The notes under the pieces were generated by a model that had not been told where the DNA came from, ran no database searches, and saw only the letters and a program-made list of their open reading frames with translations. This document shows positions 13,322 to 60,184 of a stretch of 64,000 nt of DNA, piece by piece (the first letter of the stretch is position 1; each line of letters starts with the position of its first letter). Location of the stretch: contig NW_026262701.1 of NCBI RefSeq assembly GCF_021869535.1, positions 113,832,001 to 113,896,000 on the forward strand. Reading direction: 5' to 3'. The stretch comes from Mytilus californianus. Lineage: Eukaryota. The position numbers and the translations under genes are program-made.

Positions 13322-13604
13322 AAACAAGAATGTGTCCATAGTACACGGATACCCCACTCGCACCATCATTTTCTATGTTCAGTGGACCGTGAAATTGGGG
13401 TCAAAACTCTTATTTGGCAATAAAATTAGAAAGATCATATCATAGGGAACATTTGTACTAAGTTTCTAATTGATTGGACTTCAACTTCATCAAAAACTAC
13501 CTTAACCAAAAACTTTAACCTGAAACGGGACAGACGAACGAACGGATGGACGAACGGACGGACGAACGAACGAACGAACGGACGCAGAGACCGAAAAACA
13601 TAAT
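13322..13604 (+). mobile_element. Left part of a small HINE/MITE-like element with a (GACG/GAAC)n tract, split by the LINE; the right part is 20163-20196
   Basis: An intact reverse-oriented family member at ~56041-56330 reads ...AAAAATATAATGCCCCTAAGTGAGGGGCATATAAA. Here ...AAAAACATAAT ends at 13604 and ATGCCC...GGGGCATAAAAAC resumes at 20163. Confidence 0.85.
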
Positions 13605-13642
13605 TTAGTTTAAACATATTTTATTTGCTTAAATATGCAAAA

Positions 13643-13684
13643 GGGATGAGACACAAGTTAATCAAACTTATGAAGTCTTCTCCC
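13643..13684 (-). other. LINE 3' UTR stem-loop (candidate ORF2p recognition element)
   Basis: The RNA reads GGGA-GA-AGAC...CAUAAGUU-UGAUU-AACUUGUG...UCCC. The inner hairpin (AUAAGUU-UGAUU-AACUUGU) is unchanged in the diverged copy at ~53120-53140. Confidence 0.65.
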
Positions 13685-13826
13685 ATGAACAATTTATAAC
13701 AATAGAATTTTTTACAAAGCATGCATGCAAACAATACATTGTATATATTGGATATGTAAAAGATGATGTGTGATGATGTGAATGGTTGTACACAATATAC
13801 ATGTATATGCACTTTAGTGTGCTGTA

Positions 13827-16800
13827 TTACACAATTAGAAACCTCTTTGACTCTTTAATAAACTCATATACATTCTTTACAATTCTTTCATTTTCATCAT
13901 TAGTTAATGACGAATCACCGGAGGTTAAGATGTTCAAATTTAATAGAGAGTTCTCTGGTAACCAGTTCAGATTATTAGATAGTTTGATTCTTATATTCGT
14001 ATAATTAGGACATTCAAAAAAGAAGTGAAATGAATCTTCACGCTTAGCACCACAGCTACAAGACGGATCTGAAATTATATTAACTCTGTTAAGATCATAA
14101 TTCAAAAACGAGGCTGAGCATCTAAGTTGAGTCAAAATGATGTTGAGTTTACGATTGCCAAATTTATAATGTTTGGGTACTTGGGCTTTTGAATTTAGTT
14201 TAAGATTTTTTAATTCAGTTTTGAATTTACCTAAAGAGTCAATGTTGCGGGTCAGCACATTAAGGTTATTCCACAGTCGTATAGTTGAAGGTATGAAGGA
14301 TTCTTGGGTCAATGAAAGTCTACAAAAAGGGTATATTATATCATTCCCATTACGTAAGGGATAAACAGCTGTACTTTGGATTGTTGGTGGAATTAAATTG
14401 CAAAGATAGGCTGGTGCATTATTATGTTGAATATTATAAAATAATTGTAACTTCCTCCTTTCTCTTCGTTCAGCTAGAGTTTCCCAACCAATCTCATCAT
14501 AAATAATTCTACTACTAGTAAAAATAGGAAGACCTGTTACAATTCTGGCTGCCTCAAGCTGCAGCTGCTCTAATTTGTTACAATAACCCACACCCATATT
14601 ATCCCAAACTTCACAGGCGTATTCGAGTAACGGTCTTATAAAAGTCAAGTATAGCTTTTCTAAGTTATTTCTACTTAATCTGTACTTTAGTTTTCTAAGT
14701 ACATTCAAATGTTTCGATACATTTTTTATGATACTTTCCACATGAGTGTTCCATTTAGCATCTCTACTAAATGTAACACCCAAGTGTTTATGAAAATCTG
14801 TAACTTTAATATTCTTACCATTGAATATGAAATTCATTTCCGGAGTTTCAATGTATGAAAACAACATAATTTCTGTTTTTTCTGGGTTAAAGGACATCAG
14901 CCATTTCTTAGACCAATCGCTCAGCTCACTCAGGTCGTGACTGATCACTGATTTTATTTGTGACGTGTCACGACTAGAGTAGCTGAGAGATGTGTCATCT
15001 GCAAATAATCTACATAAAGATATCAAATTTTCAGCAATATCATTAATATAAATAATGAATAAGAGCGGTCCCAAAACAGAACCCTGTGGGACACCAGCTG
15101 AAATACTGCAAAGCTCTGACGACGATTGTTTAATAACAACTCGCTGTTGTCTGTTGTTCAGGTAACTTTTAAACCAATTCAGTAATTTCCCGTCCACACC
15201 GTATGACTTCATTTTATATAGCAATCCTTGATGCCAAACTTTATCAAAAGCTTTAGAAAAGTCACAGAAAACGAAACAGCTAATTTCTTTATTTTCTAGT
15301 GAATTTAAAATACAGTTGTAAATTTCTAAAAGCTGGTGAACTGTTGAACATTTTGGAAGAAAACCAGACTGGTATTCATATATTAACTTATTTCTATGTA
15401 GGTGATTGAAGACATGTTTATAAACAACTCGCTCCATTATTTTCCCTACACAACTTATAAGCGATATAGGCCTATAGTTAGATGGTAGAGAACTATCTCC
15501 CTTTTTAAAAAAAGCAATTACATTTGCAGTCTTCCAGCTGGTGGGATATTTACATTGTTGTAGGGATTTATTAAATATTATTTTTAAAGGAATTGCTATT
15601 TTTTCAGGACACATTTTCAGCATTTTATGACTTATGACATCTGGACCAGATGCCTTATTAGGATCTAAAATTTTAATTATATCAACTATTTCATATTTTT
15701 CAATTACTAAATCATTTAAAATAATATTGGTTCTTGGTTCAACTTCAGGGATGGGAACACCTTCCTCCTCTAGGGAAGAAATTAGACTAAAATATTTATT
15801 CAACAGATTACATTTCTCGTCGTCTCCGTACACTACATCTTCCATACTTTCATCGTGAATAATATTATTAAGTGGTGGTAAATCACCAGAACCCTTATTG
15901 GATTTAATAAGCATTTTCATTATCTTCCAATAAGTTTTAGGGTTAGCCACGTTATTTAAGATGATATTATCCAAGCTTCTTTCAAATTTTTCTTTTGCAG
16001 CTTTTTTCAAATTATTTACTTTATTCCTCTGCTTTTTGTATTTATTAATGTCAGAATCTTTTTTAGTTTTTAAGGCGTTTTTACGAAATCGATCTCTTCT
16101 GCGGATTTCTTTCCTTAACTCGTTGTCAAACCATGGTCTGTCATTGTTTCGTATATAAACATGTCGAGTTGGGATGCTCTGCCTTGCGATGTCAAGGATT
16201 TTTTGAGTAAATGTATTGCACATCTCGTCGACATCCTCAACATCAGAAAAAAGTGCATCCCAACTGACAGAATCAAGTCCGGAAGAAAAATTTTTTAAAT
16301 CTGCTTTATCGTACAACCAAATTTCTCTTTTGAATGATTTGGATGCAAATCTCGGACATTCTAAAAATATTAAAGAAGCATCGTGATCACTTATTTCCGA
16401 CGGTAATTTAAGTACGTCGGCAACAGAATATTTAATTGTGTCGCTGATTATTATCGGGTCTAGTAATGTGCTACTGTGTCCAGTCACCCTTGTCGGTTTA
16501 TTTATTACATTTTCTAAATTAAAAAGTTTCATTGTATCATATAATTTATTATTATGGATTGAAAATAAATCAGAGTTCAAATCTCCTGTTATCACAATAT
16601 TCTCGCTTAGTTGGTAACTCAATCCCAGCGAATAATTAAGTCTTGTCCAATAGTCATTGTCCATCCACTCAGGCCTATAAGTACAACAAAGAAGAAATGA
16701 CTGACCTTTACCTTTAATCTCTACCCATATTGTCTCATCAATGTGGTTTTCGAGTTCACCTTTACGTACGACGGATATATCATCCTTTACATAGATGACA

Positions 16801-17300
16801 ATGCCTCCGCCGGCACTGTTACGATCCTTTCGGATTATATTCTTTGAAAATGAGGAAAGCTGCAAATCGTCAATGTTAACACTTGGATCCAAATGGGTTT
16901 CAGTTATAGTTAATATATCAAATTCGTCAGTAAAGTTTTGGAGAAAATTAAGCTTATTTCGTAGACTACGTATGTTTATGTTACATATGGATAGTGAGGT
17001 TTCATTTATGCTAGTAGAGTCAGTTATAATATCTATATTCGGACCTGGATTAGTCTCAATATTTCCTATAATTAGGATGACATTTAAAACAAATAGCAGA
17101 AAAACAATATCTATATTCGGATTTAAGCTCTGGAGAAGTGAGAGAGAGACGACGAGTAATGAGCATCTGAAATTGGTAAGTAATATTTCTTTTAAAGAGC
17201 TATCACAAGTTCGTGAGTTAAAGCTGCCGAGTCTAAAAGTGCATCTACATAAGTTAAATAACCCGATAGCTGCCCTATATTGTTCTATACAATTACCCAT
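13827..17300 (-). CDS. LINE ORF2: N-terminal leader with 2A-like motif, APE endonuclease, reverse transcriptase, C-terminal Cys/His motif (1157 aa)
   Basis: EN motifs NINIRSL, ITETHL, GDLNS and SDHD. RT motifs PGPD-like ASGPD, YRPISL, DFSKAFD, QGSVLGPLLF, FADD and HLGV. C-terminal CSCG...H...C. No stops or frameshifts. Confidence 0.98.
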   Translation of the reverse strand: MGNCIEQYRAAIGLFNLCRCTFRLGSFNSRTCDSSLKEILLTNFRCSLLVVSLSLLQSLNPNIDIVFLLFVLNVILIIGNIETNPGPNIDIITDSTSINETSLSICNINIRSLRNKLNFLQNFTDEFDILTITETHLDPSVNIDDLQLSSFSKNIIRKDRNSAGGGIVIYVKDDISVVRKGELENHIDETIWVEIKGKGQSFLLCCTYRPEWMDNDYWTRLNYSLGLSYQLSENIVITGDLNSDLFSIHNNKLYDTMKLFNLENVINKPTRVTGHSSTLLDPIIISDTIKYSVADVLKLPSEISDHDASLIFLECPRFASKSFKREIWLYDKADLKNFSSGLDSVSWDALFSDVEDVDEMCNTFTQKILDIARQSIPTRHVYIRNNDRPWFDNELRKEIRRRDRFRKNALKTKKDSDINKYKKQRNKVNNLKKAAKEKFERSLDNIILNNVANPKTYWKIMKMLIKSNKGSGDLPPLNNIIHDESMEDVVYGDDEKCNLLNKYFSLISSLEEEGVPIPEVEPRTNIILNDLVIEKYEIVDIIKILDPNKASGPDVISHKMLKMCPEKIAIPLKIIFNKSLQQCKYPTSWKTANVIAFFKKGDSSLPSNYRPISLISCVGKIMERVVYKHVFNHLHRNKLIYEYQSGFLPKCSTVHQLLEIYNCILNSLENKEISCFVFCDFSKAFDKVWHQGLLYKMKSYGVDGKLLNWFKSYLNNRQQRVVIKQSSSELCSISAGVPQGSVLGPLLFIIYINDIAENLISLCRLFADDTSLSYSSRDTSQIKSVISHDLSELSDWSKKWLMSFNPEKTEIMLFSYIETPEMNFIFNGKNIKVTDFHKHLGVTFSRDAKWNTHVESIIKNVSKHLNVLRKLKYRLSRNNLEKLYLTFIRPLLEYACEVWDNMGVGYCNKLEQLQLEAARIVTGLPIFTSSRIIYDEIGWETLAERRERRKLQLFYNIQHNNAPAYLCNLIPPTIQSTAVYPLRNGNDIIYPFCRLSLTQESFIPSTIRLWNNLNVLTRNIDSLGKFKTELKNLKLNSKAQVPKHYKFGNRKLNIILTQLRCSASFLNYDLNRVNIISDPSCSCGAKREDSFHFFFECPNYTNIRIKLSNNLNWLPENSLLNLNILTSGDSSLTNDENERIVKNVYEFIKESKRFLIV

Positions 17301-18821
17301 TGGGTTTTATCATAGAAATCATAATACATATAATAAGGCAGCAAAACGAAATATATAAATCACAACAACCACACACATCATCACATATAACTGAGGAAAA
17401 ATTCAAAAAAGACAAATAAAAGAAAAATATACAAAACAAAAGAAACAAGGTTTGGAATATGAGAGAAAGCATTTGTATTTGAAATGGGAAATGATTTACT
17501 ACTTGAAGACTTCGAACTTTTTTTAAAAAGCATTATACTGATATGTTGTTACGTGTAAAATCATATGGTTATGGAAGTTTACAAACTTCTTACCTAATTG
17601 CATTTAAGGATTATTGATTGATTGAGAAGAATTTATTAGTTCTAAATAAAATATTAAATTAAAGAAGTTAAATAAGTAAAAAAAGGAAACACCTATAAAC
17701 TCAACATTTATGCATAGAGCCACGCAAGATGAAAACAAATACTACAAGTGACATCAATACAACAAAATACATCATATACATTAAATGGTGCAGTACAGAC
17801 AAATAATAATAATAACAGCGATATAGCTACATTCGTATATGTAATTGCGAATTCAAATTTCAAGAAGTCTTTAATATTTTAGGACTTTCTAGTCAAACGC
17901 ACCCGAATTTAAATAGATAACTTCATTCTCAGTGTCAATTAACGTCAAAAGAGGCCGTAAGGGTTTACAGTATAAAATAACTGCTTCAATTTTTTAAAGT
18001 AAAGCAGGTTTTTTCATCATTAATACGTTTTGATAATAATATCTTCTTTTATATTTCAATATCATTCAAAAGTGTTCAATATAGTTGTTCATACTTAGGT
18101 ATTTGTTATCATAAATTTGAAACAAAAACCCAAGTATACGTCAGTGAACTGCATGTTTTTGCATGGTTATAACATTTTGTTTACATAAATCTTTAAAGGT
18201 GGAGGCATCTGAAGTTTTCAACAAAAAGAAGTCATATTACATTTATCATCACAGCTGTAAACTCTATCGGGTTTACAAAAATGTTTTATTAAATTTAGAT
18301 TATTTGTATTGATTTTATTTAGGTGAGAAAAAAGCATTAAATATGAATAAAGTTTTTATTTTTTTTATTAAAGGGTACAAATTTTCACTGTTATATCCAG
18401 TTTAAAAAAAGGGGGTATCACATATTATGTGTTTTTTCAAATGTATTTAGTCACTTAGGAACTTAAACAGACATCGTCACAATACGAGTTTGAAAATTAT
18501 ACTTGAATTGTCAAGCCTGGAATTATTAATATCAGTGGAAAAAAGAAATAAGTTGCAATTGTATGTACAAGTGAACAGGGGAAAGAGAGTGTGTTGGATA
18601 AATGATGTAACTAGCAGTTGAATGAAATTATTCAGATAACTAAAACAAAAACAAAGAAAAAAGCTTTAGTTGGATTAGACCATCTGTCTACTACTGAAAT
18701 TTTCAAGTTCAGACAAACCCGTTTATGGTATTAACGACGGAAAGTCAATATACATTGTATAGCAATTATTTCAACAGCTCAAACTAGATAAGAAAAACAG
18801 TTATGTTTTGTTCAAACAGTT

Positions 18822-19946
18822 TTACTCTCCATTATTAGACTGTTGTGAGTTATTAACTTCATTTGTTTCTGGACTCCTATCAGTATCTGAACGTAGTTGG
18901 TTAGGTGATTCGGTAATGCCCCGTTCGATGTCAGAGATGTCATCAAAGCTATTTATCAGTTCCTTTCTACTTTTTTCAGCCCTTTTAACAAATATACGAC
19001 CATCTGAAGTCCAATAGGCGTGTATTTGGTTGTTGTATTTCATCTGGGATAGTTTTTTTGTCAGGTCTGTTCTGAATTTGGTAAGATTCTCAGTTATGAA
19101 AATACCATCTTCGTTGTGTTTCAGATATTTTTTGTTTGTATATACCATGTCTCTAGTACGGTAAGACATAAATCTAACAATGACTTGACACTTGCCATAT
19201 TTAGCTTTACCAATGACGTGACTTCTACTAATATCGTTAATAGAGAGGTCGAGGCCAAGTTGGCTGTTGCAAATACTTAGGATTTTGTCATCCGTATTGA
19301 CTGGGTGAAGAATTTTTCCGTGTCCGTCAACTGGTACTTGGATGTTATGAAAGCGGAGACTGGTCCGACGAGAGTACTGCTCTTGGCTTTCTAATCTACT
19401 ATCTATATCCTTGGTTTTTTTATGGAGTGCCTCAAGCTCCGAATCCCAAAGGTCCAAAATTCTAGAATTTTCCTTTAACTGAGTGTCTATTTTATTTATC
19501 CATATGAATTGTCTACATATTTTTTCTGTGTGGTCATTTATTTTGGCTTCATGTTCATTGACAGACTTTTTAATTGGTTCGACGTGTGCTGCGATGCATT
19601 TTTGCACTTGTTCTTCAATTAGTGGAGTTAAGGTTTCACTGATTTTTTCAGCCAATACTGGAATTATTGTGTTGAGAACATCTGGACTGGTGAGTGCTTC
19701 AATGACCTTGTCTGTAATGTTTTTACGTGTTGCTGGTGTCTTTTTTTCGATATCTCGTAGGTCGCCTATGGAGTTGCGACGCCTAATCTGTCGTGTATTT
19801 TGCTTTTGGGTTGCAGGGAGGTTATCTGGACTATCAGGGTTACACCTTTTGTTCATATTCAGAGATGGTGAATTAATAATAGGTTGTGAATTCGTTACCA
19901 AATGGTCAGAACTGTGTTCACTTTCTTTGGCCATGGAGGTCGCCAT
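18822..19946 (-). CDS. LINE ORF1 (L1-type coiled coil-RRM-CTD RNA-binding protein, ~374 aa from the ATG at 19946)
   Basis: The coiled-coil region is followed by EQYSRRTSLRFHNI, HVIGK, VIVRFMSY, IFITENLT and YWTSDGRIFVK, which are motifs of L1-like ORF1p. The ATG at 19946 has good context (ACAATGG). The ORF-track start at 20009 is a TTG. Confidence 0.92.
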   Translation of the reverse strand: MATSMAKESEHSSDHLVTNSQPIINSPSLNMNKRCNPDSPDNLPATQKQNTRQIRRRNSIGDLRDIEKKTPATRKNITDKVIEALTSPDVLNTIIPVLAEKISETLTPLIEEQVQKCIAAHVEPIKKSVNEHEAKINDHTEKICRQFIWINKIDTQLKENSRILDLWDSELEALHKKTKDIDSRLESQEQYSRRTSLRFHNIQVPVDGHGKILHPVNTDDKILSICNSQLGLDLSINDISRSHVIGKAKYGKCQVIVRFMSYRTRDMVYTNKKYLKHNEDGIFITENLTKFRTDLTKKLSQMKYNNQIHAYWTSDGRIFVKRAEKSRKELINSFDDISDIERGITESPNQLRSDTDRSPETNEVNNSQQSNNGE

Positions 19947-20330
19947 TGTTATTGTTTTGATTAGAACCCGTTTCAAAAGCGTTTCAAAAAAGTTCTCAAA
20001 AGTTCTCAAATGATATTGATTTGTAAAATATTACGAAGTTTTTACATTACATATATAGTCTGTTAGCTATGTAGCAAGTTTCGTCATCTAACTTTTACGT
20101 TATCCAGCTTAATATCCCATTTGTGGTTAGATATATTTTACACGTCCATAGCTGATAAGCGCATGCCCAAAAATACCCTAGGTGGGGCATAAAAACAAAA
20201 CATAATTTAATATTCTGATTATTTTTATCGTTTAATAAACTTTTTTCTTGTTTCGTATGAATGAATGTCGAGTAACATTTATGACAACGACTACTGTAAC
20301 AGTAATTAGTTTTCCAAATAATTTACCTAC

Positions 20331-20593: not shown

Positions 20594-20744
20594 CTGTAAG
20601 AAGTAGAAATGAACAATGCATTTAACACTGTAATTTCAAAAAAAATAGAACTGCAATTTACACGAATTGTACTCCTCTCTCATTTGTTTTACAAATTTTA
20701 GATAAACAAATAGAAACACAGTTTTACAGTGGATTATGTCAACC

Positions 20745-21170
20745 CCTAACTATCTTCAGTGGCAATTCAATATCAACTAAAGCGCTTCAGTGGCATTTCA
20801 ATATCAACCACTTATGAGCTTCAGTTGTAATTCAAGATCAACCCATAAAGAGCTTCAGTAGCAATTCGATATTAATCCATTAAGAGCTTCAGTTGCAACT
20901 TAATATCAATCAATAAAGTGTTTCAGTGGCAATCATGTATCAACCCCTAAAGAGCTTCAATGGCAATTCAATATCAACCTCAAAAGAGCGTCAGTGTCCA
21001 TTCAATTTCAAACCTCTGGAAAGCTTTAGTGGCATTTCAATATCAACCCCTAAAGACCCTCGGTGGCAATTCAATATCAACCCATAAAGAGCTTCAAGGG
21101 CAATTTAATATCAAACCCTAAAGAACTTCAAGGGCATTTCAATAACAACCCCTTAAGAGCTTCAGTTGCA
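20745..21170. repeat. Degenerate ~35-36-bp minisatellite (CAACCCCTAAAGAGCTTCAGTGGCAATTCAATAT-like), ~12 copies, in intron 1 of the MS4A-like gene
   Basis: AGAGCTTCAG/GCAATTCAATATCAAC recurs at ~35-bp spacing. Confidence 0.85.
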
Positions 21171-21817
21171 AATCATTCATAACCCGTACATGTATACATT
21201 GATAGAATGTTCTCCTCTACTTTCGAATAATGCAAAAGAATGTGGAATGTTTATAATGAAATGAATCACTATTTTCATTATTAATCTGAAATCTGAATCT
21301 AACCAAGGGGATACTTGTGTTTACGTTCTTGCTACGAAATCGACCATTCATCTTTTTGAGGCGTGTTTTTAAGTGAATTGTTTGATTTTCTAAATTTCTT
21401 GAGAAAATTGTCTCGGAAAAGAAGTGAAAAATAGTTTGCTTCCATTGGAAATTAGAAAATAAATCAACATGGAGCTTTAAAAAATGTTCCTGTATGTTAT
21501 TGGAAAAATAGTTTGTGTGTGATAAAAATCGAAGAAAAATGTTTTTCCAGAGAAAAAATAATATGCCGCCGTAAAAATTGAAAGATCGGTGCCTTACTGT
21601 GTTGATAACATTAAATATACATTTTTTCAAATGTCTTTTTTTTTTAATTCTACTATTCATCAGCCATTGATCTACTCTCTTGGATAGTTAAGGGAGTATT
21701 TAGTTAATGCTACAAAAATATTACTTAAACTTATCAAGCACCAAGTGTACAATTAATTTCATTTTGTTTAGAAATAATCAGGTCTATATGAATATGTAAA
21801 ATAAAATTACAACATAC

Positions 21818-52062: not shown

Positions 52063-53089
52063 CTTAGGATTTTTTTCTATCTTGTGAATTGTTGAAAAAC
52101 AACAGAAATATATACTAACACGTCATATAATACTTCCCATAATGTAAATTATAACATTAATTAAGTCAAAGTCTGTAATCATTTGTCAATGTCGTCATTC
52201 TTGTAAGATGATGTGTAAAGTGGAATGTGATGAATTGTAGTGGGGCCAGTACATATTGGCCTCGGGGCAATCTATTATTATATGTTCACTGGTAAGATTT
52301 AAGATCATAATTGTACCATAACATATTTTCAATATTTAAAAACTCACTTTGTAGAAAACAAAATTCGTAAGAATATGTTGTCCTCATCCAAACTTTCTTT
52401 TACTAGGATACAATTTGTTGAAAAGTTGTACTTTATAATATTTAACATTTTCCATCATCCACGCAATTGACGTAAATGCAGATGAAGTACTAAAATCTCA
52501 GGCTTTTGAATTTCAAATAATTTCATTGTTTTCAATATTTATTTACATGACGATATTAAGAGTTCTCCGAAGTATTTAATTGATGTAAAAAAAAACAATC
52601 TCAATCTTCCCGAAACAATATTAGTAAACATTTCCTAATTAAGAAAAAAAGTGAATACAATCTATCATATTTCTTATGAAAGTTTATTTACTTGGAATAA
52701 TCATTTACATCAAGAAAGATAAACGAATATGTTTTTTAAGTAAGTTGCATTTTTACTTATTTACGGGAATAAACAGAATTCGCATTATGCAAAGTCGGTT
52801 TGATATTGTACAATTTGCATAGATTTATTAAAATAAACTCTTTAGTCTCTCTTTAAACTTTTGTTTGTTTTTAACAGTTTAATCAGTATGAATGAGCAAG
52901 GATGTGTATAGAATGAAGTATGAAGTTATATTGTACTTATGCTGAATGCGAAGTGCACGTAATTGCATGGGCGACAATTTGGATTTTATGAATACGCATT
53001 TAGAAATTTTTTAACAGAATATCGAAATATAACATATATAGCATTTATATATTTATAGCAAGGATACAAACAATTTTATATGTATGAAT

Positions 53090-53190
53090 TAATTGCTTCA
53101 ATATCCAAAAGGTATGAGACACAAGTTAATCAAACTTATAAAGTTTTCTCCCATGAACAGTTAGTAACAAACAGAGAATATTTACAAATA
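53090..53190 (-). mobile_element. 3' UTR fragment of a diverged copy of the same LINE family
   Basis: Aligns by eye to 13623-13720 (GAGACACAAGTTAATCAAACTTAT...TCTCCCATGAACA). Confidence 0.85.
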
Positions 53191-53191
53191 G

Positions 53192-56100
53192 TCTAGTCAA
53201 TTTAGTGTACAACCTGCAACTAATTGCAACACAAAGCTTTTCTCTGAAAAAAACAAGTCTGTTACTATCTATGAACAACATACTAAAACTATACAAAAAT
53301 ATATTTTGCGGAAAGTGGTGTAATTTATAAAAATGTTTTGTAGTGAAAGTAAGGTTATATGAGTTGCTTCCCCTTATTTGCCAAAGTTGAAAAAAATTAA
53401 ATTATACAAAAAATGTTCTGTATTTTTTAAAACAGTTGAAATAATACAATACAATACATAATTATTTCAATTTGAAAGAATATATATTTTTTTTCATTTA
53501 CCTTCTGGAACAAACATGTTAAGATTTAGAATCCAACAATGTTTCATAAAAAAATAAGAATGATGAGTGTTAAATGATTTTATGTTAAATATTTTATCAC
53601 AAATGAAAATTTCAGGCTCCTCGAAGCAAATAGCTACTCATGTAATGTGCGACGATCTTAGTACTCACACACCATATAAATAAAGCTTTGACTGTAACAC
53701 TGAATTGGTTACTAATAGGATGTGTACTTATTTATATTTTAGTCGGTGCCTACAGTATTTATTCATCAACTGTAATTACTAAGCTTTGAACTAGCTATGA
53801 GAAGTCAGTGTCTTTTTGTTAATTGGTTATATACTCCGTGCTGATCTTTTTGAGTTGAGCCCTTTCCAACTGGGTTTTACAATTTGTTCTTACGTTGTTT
53901 GCTATTTAAATAAAATTGAGAATGGAAATGGGGAATACTATATGTCAAAGAGACAACAACCCGACCAGATCAAGAGCAGATAACAGCCGAAAGCCACCAA
54001 TGGGCCTTCAACGCAAAGAGAAAATCCCGCACCAGGAGGTGGTCCTCAGCCGACCCCTAAATAAAAACTGTTCCTGATTATTGGAGGGTTGAGTGCTCGC
54101 AAACAGGGTTAACCCTGCACACTATGAATATGATTATCACAAGTCAGTGGCCCTTTAATACTTGGTTGTTATTGTTTGCTGTCTGTCATATTTGTTTTTT
54201 CCGTTTATTGTTTTAACATTAATCAGGCCTTTGAGTTTCTCGTTTGACTTGTTTTATATTTTGACGATGAACTATAGTTGTTTACATCCACACCAACATC
54301 ATTGATATCTCTTGTGGAAAGTTTTCTCATTGGCAATCATACAACATCTTCTTGTGTTTATAAAGTGGGGAGATTTTATAATAAGTGATGGTTTCATTGG
54401 CAAGCGATCAAACTTACTACCAAGAGATCACTGATAGAGTTAAGTGGACCTTAAAAGCTAAACATTTATATTCTTTTGGCATGAGGTGTATTTTTTTAAA
54501 TATTTTTATAGTTTCGTTCAAATGAGTTAAATACAGGTCAGAATTCCGGAAGCAGAAAACAGCGTCTTTAACATTGATATATCTGTAATAGAGTATATTT
54601 ATGAATAAAGAGAGAATTGAGGTTTTTAAAGTCAACAAGAAAGCAACCCAAACGTCTTACAAAAACCAACAGACACACTTTCAGATTAGACATGACTATC
54701 TAAACGCTATCTCTGGCCATCAAAGTCGCCCACAGACACTACAAATTTTAATTCATACACAGATGATGCATTTTTACAGTTCTTAGGCTAAAGCTGATTA
54801 CCTTTTATTAAGTTAATTCAATGAGATATATTTAATAAATAACTTGGTTATGCTTTTCTTTATATACTAGTAAGTATATATATATATATATCTTTGACCA
54901 TAATATTTTCATATAGCAGGCAACCCATGTTAGTTCTTTGTCATTACCATTTGGTTGATGTTTCAGACCACCACATACATGCAGGTTTATAGAGTACACA
55001 CAAATTAAGGCGATGTTGCTATTAACACTTCCTCCAGGAAGTGCATGATTCAACAGTGCTTATCTCATTTTCAACATCCAAAATTGGACCACTTTAGTAC
55101 AATTATTATTTAAATTCAAGCTCTTGAGGTAAATTTATAATCGCATTGACAAAGCTGCTCTTAAAATTGCCTTAAACAATATCAGATCTACATTTAATTT
55201 TCGATCTATGAGTCTGGTATCTTTTGCCCCTCTTTTAATGCTAATTCAGTGAACTAGTATATGTTCCTAAATTTAAAAAGCTTATATATCTGAAATTAAA
55301 CGTGGATATTGATAGAGCTTGCTAAATAAAATTAGCAACATATTAAGAGAAATCTGCAATCACATCGTCTGTGTTTAACTGTGACGTTATGCAATTCAAA
55401 TATTGTAAAAGTAGCTAATGAAAAAATACACAAAAAGGACTACAGTCAATGACGATGCAAGGACACTAGAAAAATGACTTTTCCAGCAATTAACATGACA
55501 AAATCAAAGTCAGTAACCAAACTGATTTACAGTTATTTTTGAACACAATCATTTTTTGTTTATAATACCTACACGTATAATTACTATAAATACATAACAG
55601 AAACATAAGATAAAATTTCAAACTTCCACAAAATGCACATATTTAAAACTGAGTTTTACTGTGTATTTGTTTATTCTATATTGTCTAGAGAAACTAGGGG
55701 AGAGTTGAGTTCTCACACAACATGTTTTACCACTGCCACATTATTGCACCTATCCAAAGTCAGGAACCTCTAGCCTTTATTTGTCTTGTGTGTGGTTTTT
55801 TTGTGATAATTTTGGTTCATTTGTATGTACTGGAGTTTAGGGTGGTGTCCATTTTGCTGAACTAGTGTACAAAATAATTAAGGGGTCAGCTGAAGCCCAC
55901 CTCCGTGTTCCGGATTTACTTGCTATGTTAAAGACCCATTAGTGGCCTTGTTTTCTCTTTGACACATTCCCTGTTTCCGTTCTCCATTTTTTCGTTTTTA
56001 AAAATCAAACTAGAAATAACCAAGATTTTAAATTTTTCATTTTATATGCCCCTCACTTAGGGGCATTATATTTTTCTGTCTGTGCGTCTGTTCGTTCGTC

Positions 56101-57732
56101 CGTCTGTCCTGCTTGAGATTAAAGTTTTTTGTTAAAGTTTTTGGTCAAGGTATTTTTTTATAAAGTTGAAGTCCAACCATATTGAAACTTAGTACAAATG
56201 TTCCCTATGATAAGATCTTTCTAATTTTAATGCCAAATTCGAGTTTTGACCCAATTTCACAGTCCACTGAACATAGAAAATGATAGTGCGGGTGGGCATC
56301 CGTGTACTATGGATACTGATATTCTTGTTTTGTAGTTAGTGTGTAAAACAAAATATTTCACACAACAAATTGATTATTATTGATATCGATAACAAGAGGA
56401 ATACATATGCGATAAACATAAGATAATATAGTCTGTCTATAAAGATCCTATGTTAAAAGTTTTAACCATGAATAATCGAGTTTTTTATTTCCATTTTTCA
56501 CAATTTTTCTCTACAAATCACATTTAACACAAGAATTACAATTTTTTAAATACTAATAACTATAGGACTTCTTAAGATAATCATTAGATAGTATTCTCTA
56601 TTTTCTGTTAAGATCCCAATTTGAAAGTTTTAACTATCAATAACCGAGATATTTTCATTTCCAGTTTTCCGGGTTTTCGGTCTTAAAACATATGTTCAAC
56701 CAAAATTACCCAATTTGAAATATTAATATTGATAACTAAAGGACTTCACAAATAAAACATAATATAGTAGAGTGGGGGTGCTCATTTTCGCCATAATTTT
56801 CCATGTTTTCTGCAGTTTATGTTCAGACCTTTAAGTTTTTGAAGTATACTGATATTTCTATATGAAGATAACATCAAAAGCAAAATATTCTTAGCTTGAA
56901 AACGTGTTTCTCTGAAAAAATTTATCTGAAAAGTTAGATTAAAAGCTATTTGAAATTTCCTGATGTTTTGTCATAGGGGGACACATATTCGCCGTTTTTA
57001 CACATCTATTTAAAACCAAATAACTGCAGCTTTAAACAATATTCATCAAATTCATTATAGATGAATAGCAGACATTTCAAAGGTGTAAAGAACTGAAATT
57101 TAGGGCAATCAGTCAAAGAATTACTAAGAAATACTTCTTTGAAATCTTTCTTTCATTCAGGAAATTGGCCAAAAATCGTTGTCCGTTTTTTATAAAAATA
57201 TAATTTACCGGCATATTTCTTCCATTTCAGCAATCCTTTGAAGTTTCTACACCTCAAAATCATAAAACGGCGAAACTGTGTCCCCGGCGAATATGTGCGC
57301 CCCACTCTATGTTCTTTTTCTATATAGATCAAGTTTTAAAAAATATTAACCATGAACAACGGAGATTTTCTACGTTTCCAGTTTTCAGCGTTTTTTCACT
57401 AAAAATCACTCATTTCACCTCAAAATTACTTCAATATGAATAATAATAACTAGAGGACTACATAATACTCTATAAAGATAAGGTTGCATGTCTTCAACAA
57501 GCTTTAGGTCTAAAAATGTAACCATAAATAACAATTTTTCTTCTTTTCCAGTTTTCAGCATTTTTTCCTCTTAAAACCACATATTTCATCCCAAAATAAC
57601 CTTTTCCGCAAATAATATCAATTTATAGTTTTAGTATGTTTTTAGTACAAGTCTATATTATAATTTGCACTAAAAAAACCTTGTGTTACAATTAGTTGCA
57701 GGTTGAGCGATTTTATAGCTAAATTGACTAGG
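53192..57732. mobile_element. Probable TIR DNA-transposon derivative (~4.5 kb) with ~140-bp imperfect terminal inverted repeats, carrying nested repeats
   Basis: CTAGTCAATTTAG...CAACCTGCAACTAATTG...CATACTAAAACTATA...TTTGCGGAAA at ~53192-53325 is mirrored at ~57603-57732. Internal related blocks lie at ~56480, 56645, 57360 and 57535. No transposase ORF. Confidence 0.55.
56041..56330 (-). mobile_element. Intact copy of the small HINE/MITE-like family that is split at 13322-13604/20163-20196
   Basis: Reverse complement of the 13322-13604 sequence, plus the terminal hairpin ATGCCCCT-AAGTG-AGGGGCAT. Confidence 0.85.
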
Positions 57733-57740
57733 TTAAAAGC

Positions 57741-58084
57741 NNNNNNNNNNNNNNNNNNNNNNNNNNNNNNNNNNNNNNNNNNNNNNNNNNNNNNNNNNNN
57801 NNNNNNNNNNNNNNNNNNNNNNNNNNNNNNNNNNNNNNNNNNNNNNNNNNNNNNNNNNNNNNNNNNNNNNNNNNNNNNNNNNNNNNNNNNNNNNNNNNNN
57901 NNNNNNNNNNNNNNNNNNNNNNNNNNNNNNNNNNNNNNNNNNNNNNNNNNNNNNNNNNNNNNNNNNNNNNNNNNNNNNNNNNNNNNNNNNNNNNNNNNNN
58001 NNNNNNNNNNNNNNNNNNNNNNNNNNNNNNNNNNNNNNNNNNNNNNNNNNNNNNNNNNNNNNNNNNNNNNNNNNNNNNNNNNNN
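57741..58084. other. Assembly gap (N run)
   Basis: Directly visible. Confidence 1.
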
Positions 58085-59760
58085 TGCGATATGTAAAAAT
58101 GATGATGTGAATGGTTGTACACAGTAAATATATACACATTATTATGCTACTTTATAAATCAATAAACTCTTTGACTCTTAAATAAATTCATACACATTGT
58201 TTTATAAATTATTTCATTTTGGTCATAAGTTAGTGACATATGACCGGAAGTTATGATGTTCAAATTTAAAGGACAATTATTTGGTAACCAGTTCAGATTA
58301 TTAGATAGTTTATTTCTTATATTAGGACATTATAAAAAAAACTGTTATGAATCTTCAAGCTTAGCACCACAACGACACGACGGATCTAAAACAACATTGA
58401 CTTGGTCTGTGAAGATCATGTATTTCAATAAATTGCTTCGCCGAGTGCAGCTGGATACGACCGCAGAGGTCCAACCCTGAACAATTGGGGCAAAAATGGA
58501 CACAATATTCGCGCTTGATACAGGTCTGAATTTGGATTGTAATTCAATATTCCGACACAGAGTAACTGTAGTCAAAGAACTTAGAATTGGTTATATGATT
58601 TGAATTTATATTCAATTTTTTGCTTTTGTGCAATACACTATGCTGTTGCGAATTGACCTCCCCCCCCCCCCTTTTTAAAAAAAATTTGAAGGATTTTCTT
58701 TTTGATTTCTGAAATCTTGAGGAGAAACTCCCCCCCCCCCCCACCACCAATTTGTTTTTAACCTCCCCCCCCCCCCCCACATTTTCCAAAAAAAACATCT
58801 TTCCCTCAGTCATGGTCATAATTTCAATTCAAATTTCCAATGGAGTTTGCAACCATAATAACCCATTTAAATACATCATAAAAGTCTTAAAATGACATAC
58901 ATAATCATAGCTAAAATTAATTTACCTTAATCAGCATTTTTAAAAATTATTAAAATAGTAACTTCTAAAAATGAATTGACAGCTAATCACATCAAAAATT
59001 TGTACTTTGAATTGTTGGTGGAATTATACGTAAGGGGTAAACAGTTGTACTTTGAATTGTTGGTGGATTTATACGTAAGGGGTAAACAGTTGTATTTTGA
59101 ATTGTTGGTGGATTTATACGTAAGGGGTAAACAGTTGTACTTTGAATTGTTGGTGGAATTATACGTAAGGGGTAAACAGTTGTACTTTGAATTGTTGGTG
59201 GATTTATACGTAAGGGGTGAACAGTTGTACTTTGAATTGTTGGTGGAATTATACGTAAGGGGTAAACAGTTGTACTTTGAATTGTTGGTGGATTTATACG
59301 TAAGGGGTAAACAGTTGTATTTTGAATTGTTGGTGGATTTATACGTAAGGGGTAAACAGTTGTACTTTGAATTGTTGGTGGAATTATACGTAAGGGGTAA
59401 ACAGTTGTACTTTGAATTGTTGGTGGATTTATACGTAAGGGGTAAACAGTTGTACTTTGAATTGTTGGTGGAATTATACGTAAGGGGTAAACAGTTGTAC
59501 TTTGAATTGTTGGTGGAATTATACGTAAGGGGTAAACAGTTGTACTTTGAATTGTTGGTGGATTTATACGTAAGGGGTGAACAGTTGTACTTTGCATTGT
59601 TGGTGTAATTAACTTGCAAAGATAAGATGGTGCATTATTATCTTGAATATTATAAAATAGTTGTTACTTCCTCTTTTCTTTCGTTCAGCTAGAGTTTTCC
59701 AATCAATTTTATTATAAATGATTCTTAATCTAGTAAAATAGGAAACCCTGTTACAGCTCT
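58085..59760 (-). pseudogene. Decayed, 5'-truncated LINE ORF2 C-terminus and 3' UTR, interrupted by another repeat (~58450-58990) and a minisatellite expansion
   Basis: 58085-58450 aligns to ~13750-14130 and 59600-59760 aligns to ~14385-14545. The remnant peptide DPSCRCGAKLEDS compares with DPSCSCGAKREDS in the intact ORF2. Confidence 0.88.
59001..59608. repeat. 45-bp minisatellite, ~13.5 copies, derived from LINE ORF2
   Basis: The unit TACGTAAGGGGTAAACAGTTGTACTTTGAATTGTTGGTGGAATTA matches 14351-14395. It translates as PPTIQSTTVYPLRII versus PPTIQSTAVYPLRN in the intact ORF2. Confidence 0.95.
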
Positions 59761-60184
59761 GGTGGGCTTTTCTGTTTACGATGGTTTTTTTCTATGTTTT
59801 TAATCTGCTATGCTTATGTTATGCCTAGTTTTTCCCGTGAATGCATCACCTGGAACTTATTCATTGATATATATTGGTCATAGCCATCACCGTGACAACA
59901 ATCTTGAAAATATATACTTATACTATAGCCTGTAGTTCAGTGGTTGTCGTTGGTTCATGTCTGTCATAGTTGTTTTTCGTAAATAGTTTTGTTATGAATT
60001 AGGCCGTTAATTTTCTCAATTGAATTGTTTCATATTTTTCATGTCGGGGTCTTTTATAGCCGACTATACGGTATGGGTTTTTCTCATTGTTGAAGACCGT
60101 ACGGTTGTCTATAATTGCTTACATCCACTTTATTTGAACTACTTTGGTGGATAGGTGTCTCATTGGCAATCATACCATATCTCC

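Follow-up and report, generated by a model that had tools for sequence, protein, structure and literature searches.

Lineage-specific complementarity around ORF2 in a bivalve LINE clade and its possible role in reverse transcriptase expression

The window analysed here is a 64,000-nt stretch of the Mytilus californianus genome (assembly GCF_021869535.1, contig NW_026262701.1, positions 113,832,001 to 113,896,000). It contains, on the minus strand, a full-length copy of a long interspersed nuclear element (LINE) in which a short segment upstream of the second open reading frame (ORF2) is complementary to a segment of the 3' untranslated region (UTR). An earlier note on this DNA had proposed that base-pairing between these two arms loops out ORF2 in the element RNA. 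The comparison of relatives strongly supports that proposal, as lineage-specific complementarity was found in 15 lineages. The features concerned are listed below in window coordinates.

13604..20168, minus strand: full-length LINE copy of about 6.57 kb, limits set by copies elsewhere in its own genome
18822..19946, minus strand: ORF1, 374 amino acids counted from the first ATG (ORF reading)
17473..18821, minus strand: spacer of about 1.35 kb between ORF1 and the upstream ORF (uORF), with all same-strand ORFs at or below 51 codons
17293..17472, minus strand: conserved uORF of 59 codons containing the 5' arm (ORF comparison across lineages)
17365..17385, minus strand: 5' arm of the putative long-range duplex (complementarity, shuffles, co-folding)
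17333..17342, minus strand: 5' strand of a local hairpin (GCUGCCUUAU), paired with 17269-17278 in the minimum free energy (MFE) and centroid folds
17293..17300, minus strand: stop-start overlap AUGGGUAA of the ORF2 AUG and the uORF UAA, nearly invariant across lineages
13827..17300, minus strand: ORF2, 1157 amino acids, with apurinic/apyrimidinic (AP) endonuclease and reverse transcriptase (RT) domains (Pfam)
17269..17278, minus strand: 3' strand of the local hairpin (AUAGGGCAGC), in ORF2 codons 8-11 (folds, comparison of relatives)
13769..13789, minus strand: 3' arm of the putative long-range duplex, with an alternative register at 13762-13779 (complementarity, folding)

On the minus strand the 5' arm (17385..17365) reads TGTGATGATGTGTGTGGTTGT, and 64 nt separate its end from the ORF2 ATG at 17300. 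The 3' arm (13789..13769) reads ACAACCATTCACATCATCACA and begins 37 nt past the ORF2 stop codon (13829-13827), in a 3' UTR of 223 nt. The 21-nt arms are 3576 nt apart and form 19 Watson-Crick pairs, one G.U pair and one U.U mismatch, with a duplex energy of -30.3 kcal/mol; the coordinates, letters, offsets and pair counts of the earlier note were reread exactly. A second register (13762-13779 with 17365-17382) is available because CACATCATCA is tandemly duplicated in the 3' arm. The 3' UTR folded by itself leaves the 3' arm unpaired, and a co-fold of the window copy with local competition had 20 of the 21 arm positions paired in the MFE structure. Complementarity was measured by an ungapped score (GC 3, AU 2, GU 1, mismatch -4) and in short windows, because duplex folding of 1.5 kb against 223 nt produces chains with big interior loops and has no statistical value. 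The shuffling control suggested in the earlier note came out in favour of the arms: 3 of 2000 dinucleotide shuffles of the spacer (1521 nt) against the 3' UTR (223 nt) attained the score of 43, and with windows of 200 and 110 nt the arm-pair score was attained in none of 1000. Only three complementary pairs in the whole element score at least 38, the arm pair among them, and no other site in ORF2 plus 110 nt complements the 5' window of this copy as well as the one in the 3' UTR. The decisive evidence must nevertheless come from relatives, because such shuffles do not preserve local low complexity.

Relatives were picked solely by ORF2 protein similarity (42-70% amino acid identity overall) and their flanks were then read; the sources were the same genome, Mytilus edulis, metagenomes and a contig from a clam-symbiont metagenome-assembled genome (MAG). 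Eight outside lineages (62-70% identity) consisted of L087 from Mytilus edulis and of metagenome or Logan contigs. The own genome contributed six further families (B, C, D, E, M and N, of which M and N are about 44% identical), which were read as short flanks, own-genome copies being studied through flanks of 140-350 nt. L116 (42% identity) lies on the contig filed under the clam-symbiont MAG, which is presumably host DNA. The partial relatives L083 and L084 had no usable 5' side.

A complementary pair was present at the equivalent place in 15 of 15 lineages, with the 5' arm ending 57-88 nt before the ORF2 start and the distal partner always within the first part of the 3' UTR, starting 16-65 nt past the stop. 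When each lineage was shuffled 1000 times, no more than one shuffle attained its score in 12 of 14. The two remaining lineages, L079 and N, show perfect helices of 9 and 10 bp at the expected place, and the gapped duplex of L079 (-28.8 kcal/mol) was the strongest among all 3' regions tried against its 5' region. The fifteenth lineage, L116, scored 44 at offsets of -64/+45. The duplex was contained in the co-fold MFE structure in 14 of 14 lineages, and in 8 of 9 the 5' window had no better complement in ORF2 plus 110 nt than the 3' UTR site. The candidate of L081 was weak (35 of 1000 shuffles attained its score) and no bridge was found among the flanks of L082; neither lineage was counted as positive. 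In a tree of the available ORF2 proteins, L116 and L081 fall outside the main group, so the bridge is either old or arose twice.

The letters of the arms differ between lineages. The arms of families E (CUGUGGACACGAUG) and M (CAUUCGAAGUCAACAA) each have a perfect match in their own 3' UTR, and the 3' UTRs likewise match the arm ends of L086 (UUACUAAG) and L080 (GGAUUAUCUCAGGG), the arm of L116 (GUCAUCAUCGAGAAU) and the GUGCCGGU included in the arm of family B. In L079, GAU GAU is replaced by GAC GAC, which is synonymous in the uORF, and the partner AUC in the 3' arm by GUC. The concern of the earlier note about low complexity applies to the window copy, whose arms are microsatellite-like, but not to several other lineages, the arms of E, M, L080, L086 and L116 being non-repetitive. 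As a control for the shared TG/CA composition, each 5' region was paired with each 3' region. The cognate pairs summed to 512, a value attained in none of 10^6 partner permutations (maximum 480), and the non-cognate mean was 23.1 per pair; an earlier permutation test with eight lineages gave 2 of 40320. This test is conservative, because related lineages cross-pair through shared ancestry. Covariation was judged from cognate versus non-cognate pairs because the arms cannot be aligned across lineages and the MAFFT alignment of the upstream region is too loose for RNAalifold or column-wise covariation. The arms thus persist at constant offsets with compensatory change, which is what the earlier note had wanted tested, and the sequence comparisons give good support to the conclusion that they represent a pairing potential under selection rather than a chance match.

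Within its own family the element is young. Many copies are 96-100% identical, stop-free full-length ORF2 matches occur at seven places, and both arms are invariant in these copies, which therefore show no covariation. Older, decayed own-genome copies (82-92%) are rearranged and their 3' arms are not at the expected offsets; one matched pair was recovered (L070/L071), with changes that represent neutral decay. A further family member lies in the window itself.

58100..58123, minus strand: 3'-arm region of a diverged, 5'-truncated family member, with 24 nt identical to 13771-13794 inside a 77%-identical stretch

This identity, pointed out in the earlier note, was confirmed, and the member provides no test of the 5' arm because it is 5'-truncated. 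The member as a whole (58100-59762, minus strand) extends into the masked stretch 57741-58084, and a 45-bp piece of its ORF2 (equivalent to 14351-14395) has become a tandem array of about 11 units (59027-59521). A subfamily confined to one contig (C99; L021, L022, L025, L027-L030) has some 300-480 nt inserted directly before or after the 5' arm, varying by copy, and two of its copies stand in tandem, 4.7 kb apart.

The surroundings of the 5' arm are conserved as well. Rather than in untranslated spacer, this arm lies within the uORF, a frame that the earlier note had missed and whose stop overlaps the ORF2 start. In 15 of 16 lineages the arm is traversed by an ATG-started uORF, 39-78 codons long and invariably in frame +2; the exception (L085) is a decayed copy with a broken ORF2. 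The uORF stop is located +5 nt from the A of the ORF2 start in 11 lineages, +8 in two and +14 in two, and the usual letters of the overlap are AAUGGGUAA. Conservation of the uORF peptide is poor outside a C-D-D-V-C-G-like centre, which corresponds to the arm, and a terminal PNG, which corresponds to the overlap, and it may be the act of translation rather than the product that matters. In family D, ACG replaces AUG at the ORF2 start in both copies read (L096, C91:1047714; L098, C121:19026704), while stop-free ORF2 frames are found at four places; such a start is easier to reconcile with reinitiation, or with a +1 shift at GGG-UAA, than with scanning. Shifting by +1 is not general, because L087, L081 and L116 have no stop after GGG. 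Judged from its sequence and position, the overlap of uORF and ORF2 is a candidate site for termination-reinitiation or +1 shifting into ORF2. We also considered, and dropped, a splice acceptor ahead of the arm (UUUUUCCUCAG in the window copy), since its AG is not conserved in relatives.

The overlap itself is predicted to lie near the tip of a long hairpin, formed by a local helix between positions -55..-31 (motif UGGCUGC) and +22..+55 of ORF2 (GCAGCCA, codons R-A-A-I). At most 1 of 1000 shuffles attained the score of this helix in 6 of 11 lineages, and the helix covaries in the distant L116, L081 and L082. The hairpin is nested directly within the long-range helix; the 5' arm, about 60 nt upstream of the conserved stop-start overlap, adjoins the hairpin that encloses it.

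These elements could together constitute a four-part module for ORF2 expression: a uORF of 39-78 codons, the overlap AUGGGUAA, the hairpin with the start codon near its tip and the bridge that links mid-uORF sequence with the beginning of the 3' UTR. Of the two functions put forward in the earlier note, promotion of ORF2 translation and cis preference, a translational role for the long-range duplex as part of this module is the one we lean towards, because the 5' arm sits in the conserved uORF overlapping the ORF2 start, next to the conserved hairpin. The formation of the duplex in vivo and all of its function are what we infer from these data. The duplex would close a loop of about 3.6 kb, comprising the final ~60 nt of the uORF, ORF2 in its entirety and the initial 16-65 nt of the 3' UTR, and would thereby bring the ORF2 stop beside the ORF2 start. 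Access of ribosomes to ORF2 would depend entirely on translation of the uORF followed by reinitiation at the overlap; in most lineages a +1 shift at GGG-UAA might serve instead. The bridge to the 3' UTR would set the success rate of this step. Neither arm overlaps ORF2, and at least 16 nt, roughly what a terminating ribosome spans, separate the 3' arm from the stop in every case. Translation of ORF2 can therefore proceed with the bridge closed, but ribosomes on the uORF must open it. The bridge could be opened from either side, by uORF ribosomes or by RT as it advances from the 3' end, which is 165 nt distant, and such two-sided opening would coordinate RT synthesis with the use of the RNA as template, in the way that frameshift and readthrough elements acting over long distances serve the polymerases of luteo- and tombusviruses. 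Taken in full, namely that this bivalve LINE clade makes its RT as some plant RNA viruses make their polymerase, by uORF-overlap reinitiation or a +1 shift under a 3.5 kb bridge that is broken by RT, the proposal is tentative and in our estimate falls slightly short of an even chance.

Several points weigh against this reading. The only true RNA run provided 33 reads, mostly from the 3' end, with no joint across the spacer and no pile-up of starts. The route by which ribosomes come to a uORF 1.35 kb past ORF1 is unexplained, and the 5' partner lies some 60 nt upstream of the overlap site. The distant L081 and L082 have the uORF and the hairpin without a clear bridge (weak in the former, none in the latter). 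The 15 cases are not 15 independent events, as the lineages share ancestry. Finally, the wobble counts fail to show that plus-strand RNA is the pairing molecule, since G.U (7) and A.C (5) are equally rare inside the arms.

The strongest competing explanation, which we regard as unlikely, holds that the duplex serves the RNA only as template or in its ribonucleoprotein (RNP) particle, without any role in ORF2 translation: as a cyclisation element of the kind of Ty1 CYC5/CYC3 or the flavivirus cyclisation sequence (CS) and upstream AUG region (UAR), it would compact the RNA, assist RNP assembly or help reverse transcription. This explanation fits the covariation evidence equally well. In Ty1, reverse transcription is promoted by complementarity between distant 5' and 3' segments, flaviviruses depend on cyclisation for their replication, and the LINE 5' arm lies in a translated region, as does the flavivirus 5' CS. 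The offsets, however, are kept to the start and stop of ORF2 and not to the ends of the RNA, the 5' arm being about 2.8 kb from the 5' end of the element, and the arm is embedded in the module of uORF, overlap and hairpin. The tail of the element also bears on this explanation.

13643..13684, minus strand: 3'-terminal stem-loop (GGGAGAAGAC...GUGUCUCAUCCC) in the centroid fold of the 3' UTR

The motif of this stem-loop was found again in the relative L084 and in another repeat of the window (53089-53188, minus strand). Judging by that repeat and by differing loose read ends at 13681-13685, only the last ~80-100 nt of the LINE tail is shared; the shared part includes the terminal stem-loop but not the 3' arm. 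The repeat had no match in Rfam and could be a non-autonomous partner or a different LINE family with the same tail. Its lack of the arm argues, if weakly, that 3'-end recognition by RT probably does not require the 3' arm.

It is improbable that the duplex is a structural barrier or protein platform unrelated to recoding, which would stop 40S subunits that skipped the uORF AUG, shield the RNA from nucleases or silencing, or bind a double-stranded RNA-binding protein. The near-perfect helices of 14-22 bp (about -20 to -30 kcal/mol) could halt scanning subunits and not elongating ribosomes, and the very small number of pairs other than Watson-Crick would suit recognition as double-stranded RNA. 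A purely local hairpin would suffice for this, though, and the location of the partner directly after the ORF2 stop in every lineage is left unaccounted for. Less credit still can be given to the idea that the complementarity acts not in plus-strand RNA but in minus-strand cDNA or DNA, as a hairpin or cruciform at second-strand synthesis. The absence of a G.U excess over A.C agrees with it, and the duplex energies predicted for the reverse-complement strand are equal or better; the wobble counts are small, however, target-primed reverse transcription has no known step needing such a structure, and the co-location with the uORF, overlap and start-site hairpin indicates mRNA. A functionless chance match of TG-rich and CA-rich low-complexity tracts, to which the microsatellite-like arms of the window copy, their second register and another 21-nt, 90% complementary pair inside ORF2 might lend some colour, can hardly be credited in view of the shuffling results, the comparison of cognate with non-cognate pairs and the arms that are not repetitive.

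The closest parallel appears to be with the long-distance recoding elements of plant RNA viruses. The analogy drawn in the earlier note, with 3' cap-independent translational elements (CITEs) and cyclisation, is reasonable, but these frameshift and readthrough elements are closer. They act in -1 frameshifting in BYDV (barley yellow dwarf virus), RCNMV (red clover necrotic mosaic virus) and PEMV2 (pea enation mosaic virus 2) and, as proximal and distal readthrough elements (PRTE-DRTE), in TBSV (tomato bushy stunt virus), CIRV (carnation Italian ringspot virus), TNV-D (tobacco necrosis virus D) and TCV (turnip crinkle virus); as proposed for the LINE, the polymerase ORF is reached by non-canonical translation (PMC5893793, PMC3234231, PMC4737148). 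Pairing of the recoding site with the 3' UTR over ~3.5-4 kb is needed for polymerase synthesis in TBSV, BYDV, RCNMV and PEMV2 and has been connected with the coordination of translation and replication (PMC5893793, PMC3234231). The structure at the putative LINE site is likewise predicted to pair with the 3' UTR over such a distance, and the pairing is thought in the viruses, and proposed here for the LINE, to coordinate ribosomes and polymerase moving in opposite directions. Unlike these viruses, the LINE is an animal retrotransposon; it has a uORF stop/ORF2 start overlap in place of a slippery heptamer or leaky stop, its 5' partner lies within the uORF, ~60 nt before the site, and its helices are longer (10-22 bp versus 5-7), with a function that is only predicted. 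The Min Jou interaction of the MS2 phage is a pairing over a long distance, with its 5' partner in an upstream cistron that is translated, and upstream translation opens it and so controls translation of the polymerase. It differs from the LINE bridge in that bacterial ribosomes enter at a Shine-Dalgarno site and the distance is ~300 nt.

The covarying 5' CS/UAR and 3' CS/UAR arms of flaviviruses, for which a switch between translation and replication has been proposed, also span the whole polymerase ORF with a translated 5' partner (PMC12168079, PMC5101012), but they are located at the genome ends, whereas the LINE 5' arm is internal, after ORF1 and the 1.35 kb spacer. Ty1 CYC5/CYC3 shares with the LINE a retroelement RNA with 5'-3' complementarity, linked in Ty1 to reverse transcription (PMC7969010, PMC3592414); in contrast to the LINE, Ty1 is a long terminal repeat (LTR) element with tRNA priming inside virus-like particles and arms near the RNA ends. 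A stop/start overlap within a few nucleotides, with a required element 40-90 nt upstream or a structure nearby, is found in the calicivirus termination upstream ribosome-binding site (TURBS) and the UAAUG sites of influenza B, hypovirus and the SART1 LINE, the last of which demonstrates that a LINE is able to couple ORF2 to an upstream ORF (PMC3035654, PMC10275272, PMC3894237). The LINE described here differs from these in that a short, dedicated uORF, rather than ORF1, lies upstream, the upstream element has its pairing partner in the 3' UTR and the conserved UGGCUGC pairs with ORF2 codons 8-11.

Full-text literature searches on long-range interactions, cyclisation and panhandles in non-LTR elements returned work on Ty1, human immunodeficiency virus (HIV) and flaviviruses and nothing for LINEs; a covarying bridge around ORF2, as suggested by these sequences, would be of a kind known so far from RNA viruses and not from LINEs. 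The start of LINE ORF2 translation is an acknowledged open question, above all with long inter-ORF spacers, and a review of LINE protein biogenesis described ORF2 initiation as unresolved and judged reinitiation improbable with such spacers (PMC3894237). The clade offers a testable four-part module, with natural compensatory variants already at hand in 15 lineages. If true, the proposal would be the first description of a long-distance RNA switch in a non-LTR retrotransposon and would explain access to ORF2 after a long spacer. RNA viruses are known to use long-range bridges in coupling the synthesis of their polymerase to the copying of the template, and a case in a cellular retrotransposon would point to convergent or very old logic. 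The bridge would also offer a handle on LINE cis preference and copy-number control.

The remaining observations concern the architecture of the element and its neighbourhood. The 3' end (~13604) was set where the homology of own-genome copies stops; the terminal letters are ...AAACTAAA, with no poly(A). The 5' end (~20168) is the shared start point of eight own-genome copies. ORF1 had Baculo_FP_2nd as its sole, weak Pfam match, and ORF2 matched Exo_endo_phos (4e-10) and RVT_1 (2e-37). A post-ORF1 spacer similar to that of the window copy, 1.27 kb long, is present in the relative L076. One further feature was located in the ORF2 translation.

17040..17063, minus strand: 2A-like motif NIETNPGP, ORF2 residues 80-87

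It is preceded by a hydrophobic leader of ~80 amino acids, and L116 has the canonical DVEENPGP. Such 2A-like ribosome-skipping motifs in the N-terminal region of ORF2 have been published for mollusc CR1-clade LINEs, and the position found here is at the edge of the published range of 40-80 amino acids (PMC3708506). A leader produced by the unusual start could be shed at this motif. By its domain content, 2A leader and tail type, rather than by a reference RT phylogeny, the element appears to be CR1-like.

The strongest local inverted repeat of the element lies inside ORF2 (16167-16265, minus strand), with 33-nt arms that are 76% complementary and a 33-nt loop. The DNA flanking the 3' end of the LINE (13400-13562, 13528-13584) is itself a repeat, with an inverted copy of 13400-13562 at 56075-56250, and adjoins an (ACGA)n-like microsatellite. 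Directly upstream of the 5' end, a 34-bp unit is repeated about 13 times (20739-21175); this array is placed outside the LINE because other copies begin at ~20168.

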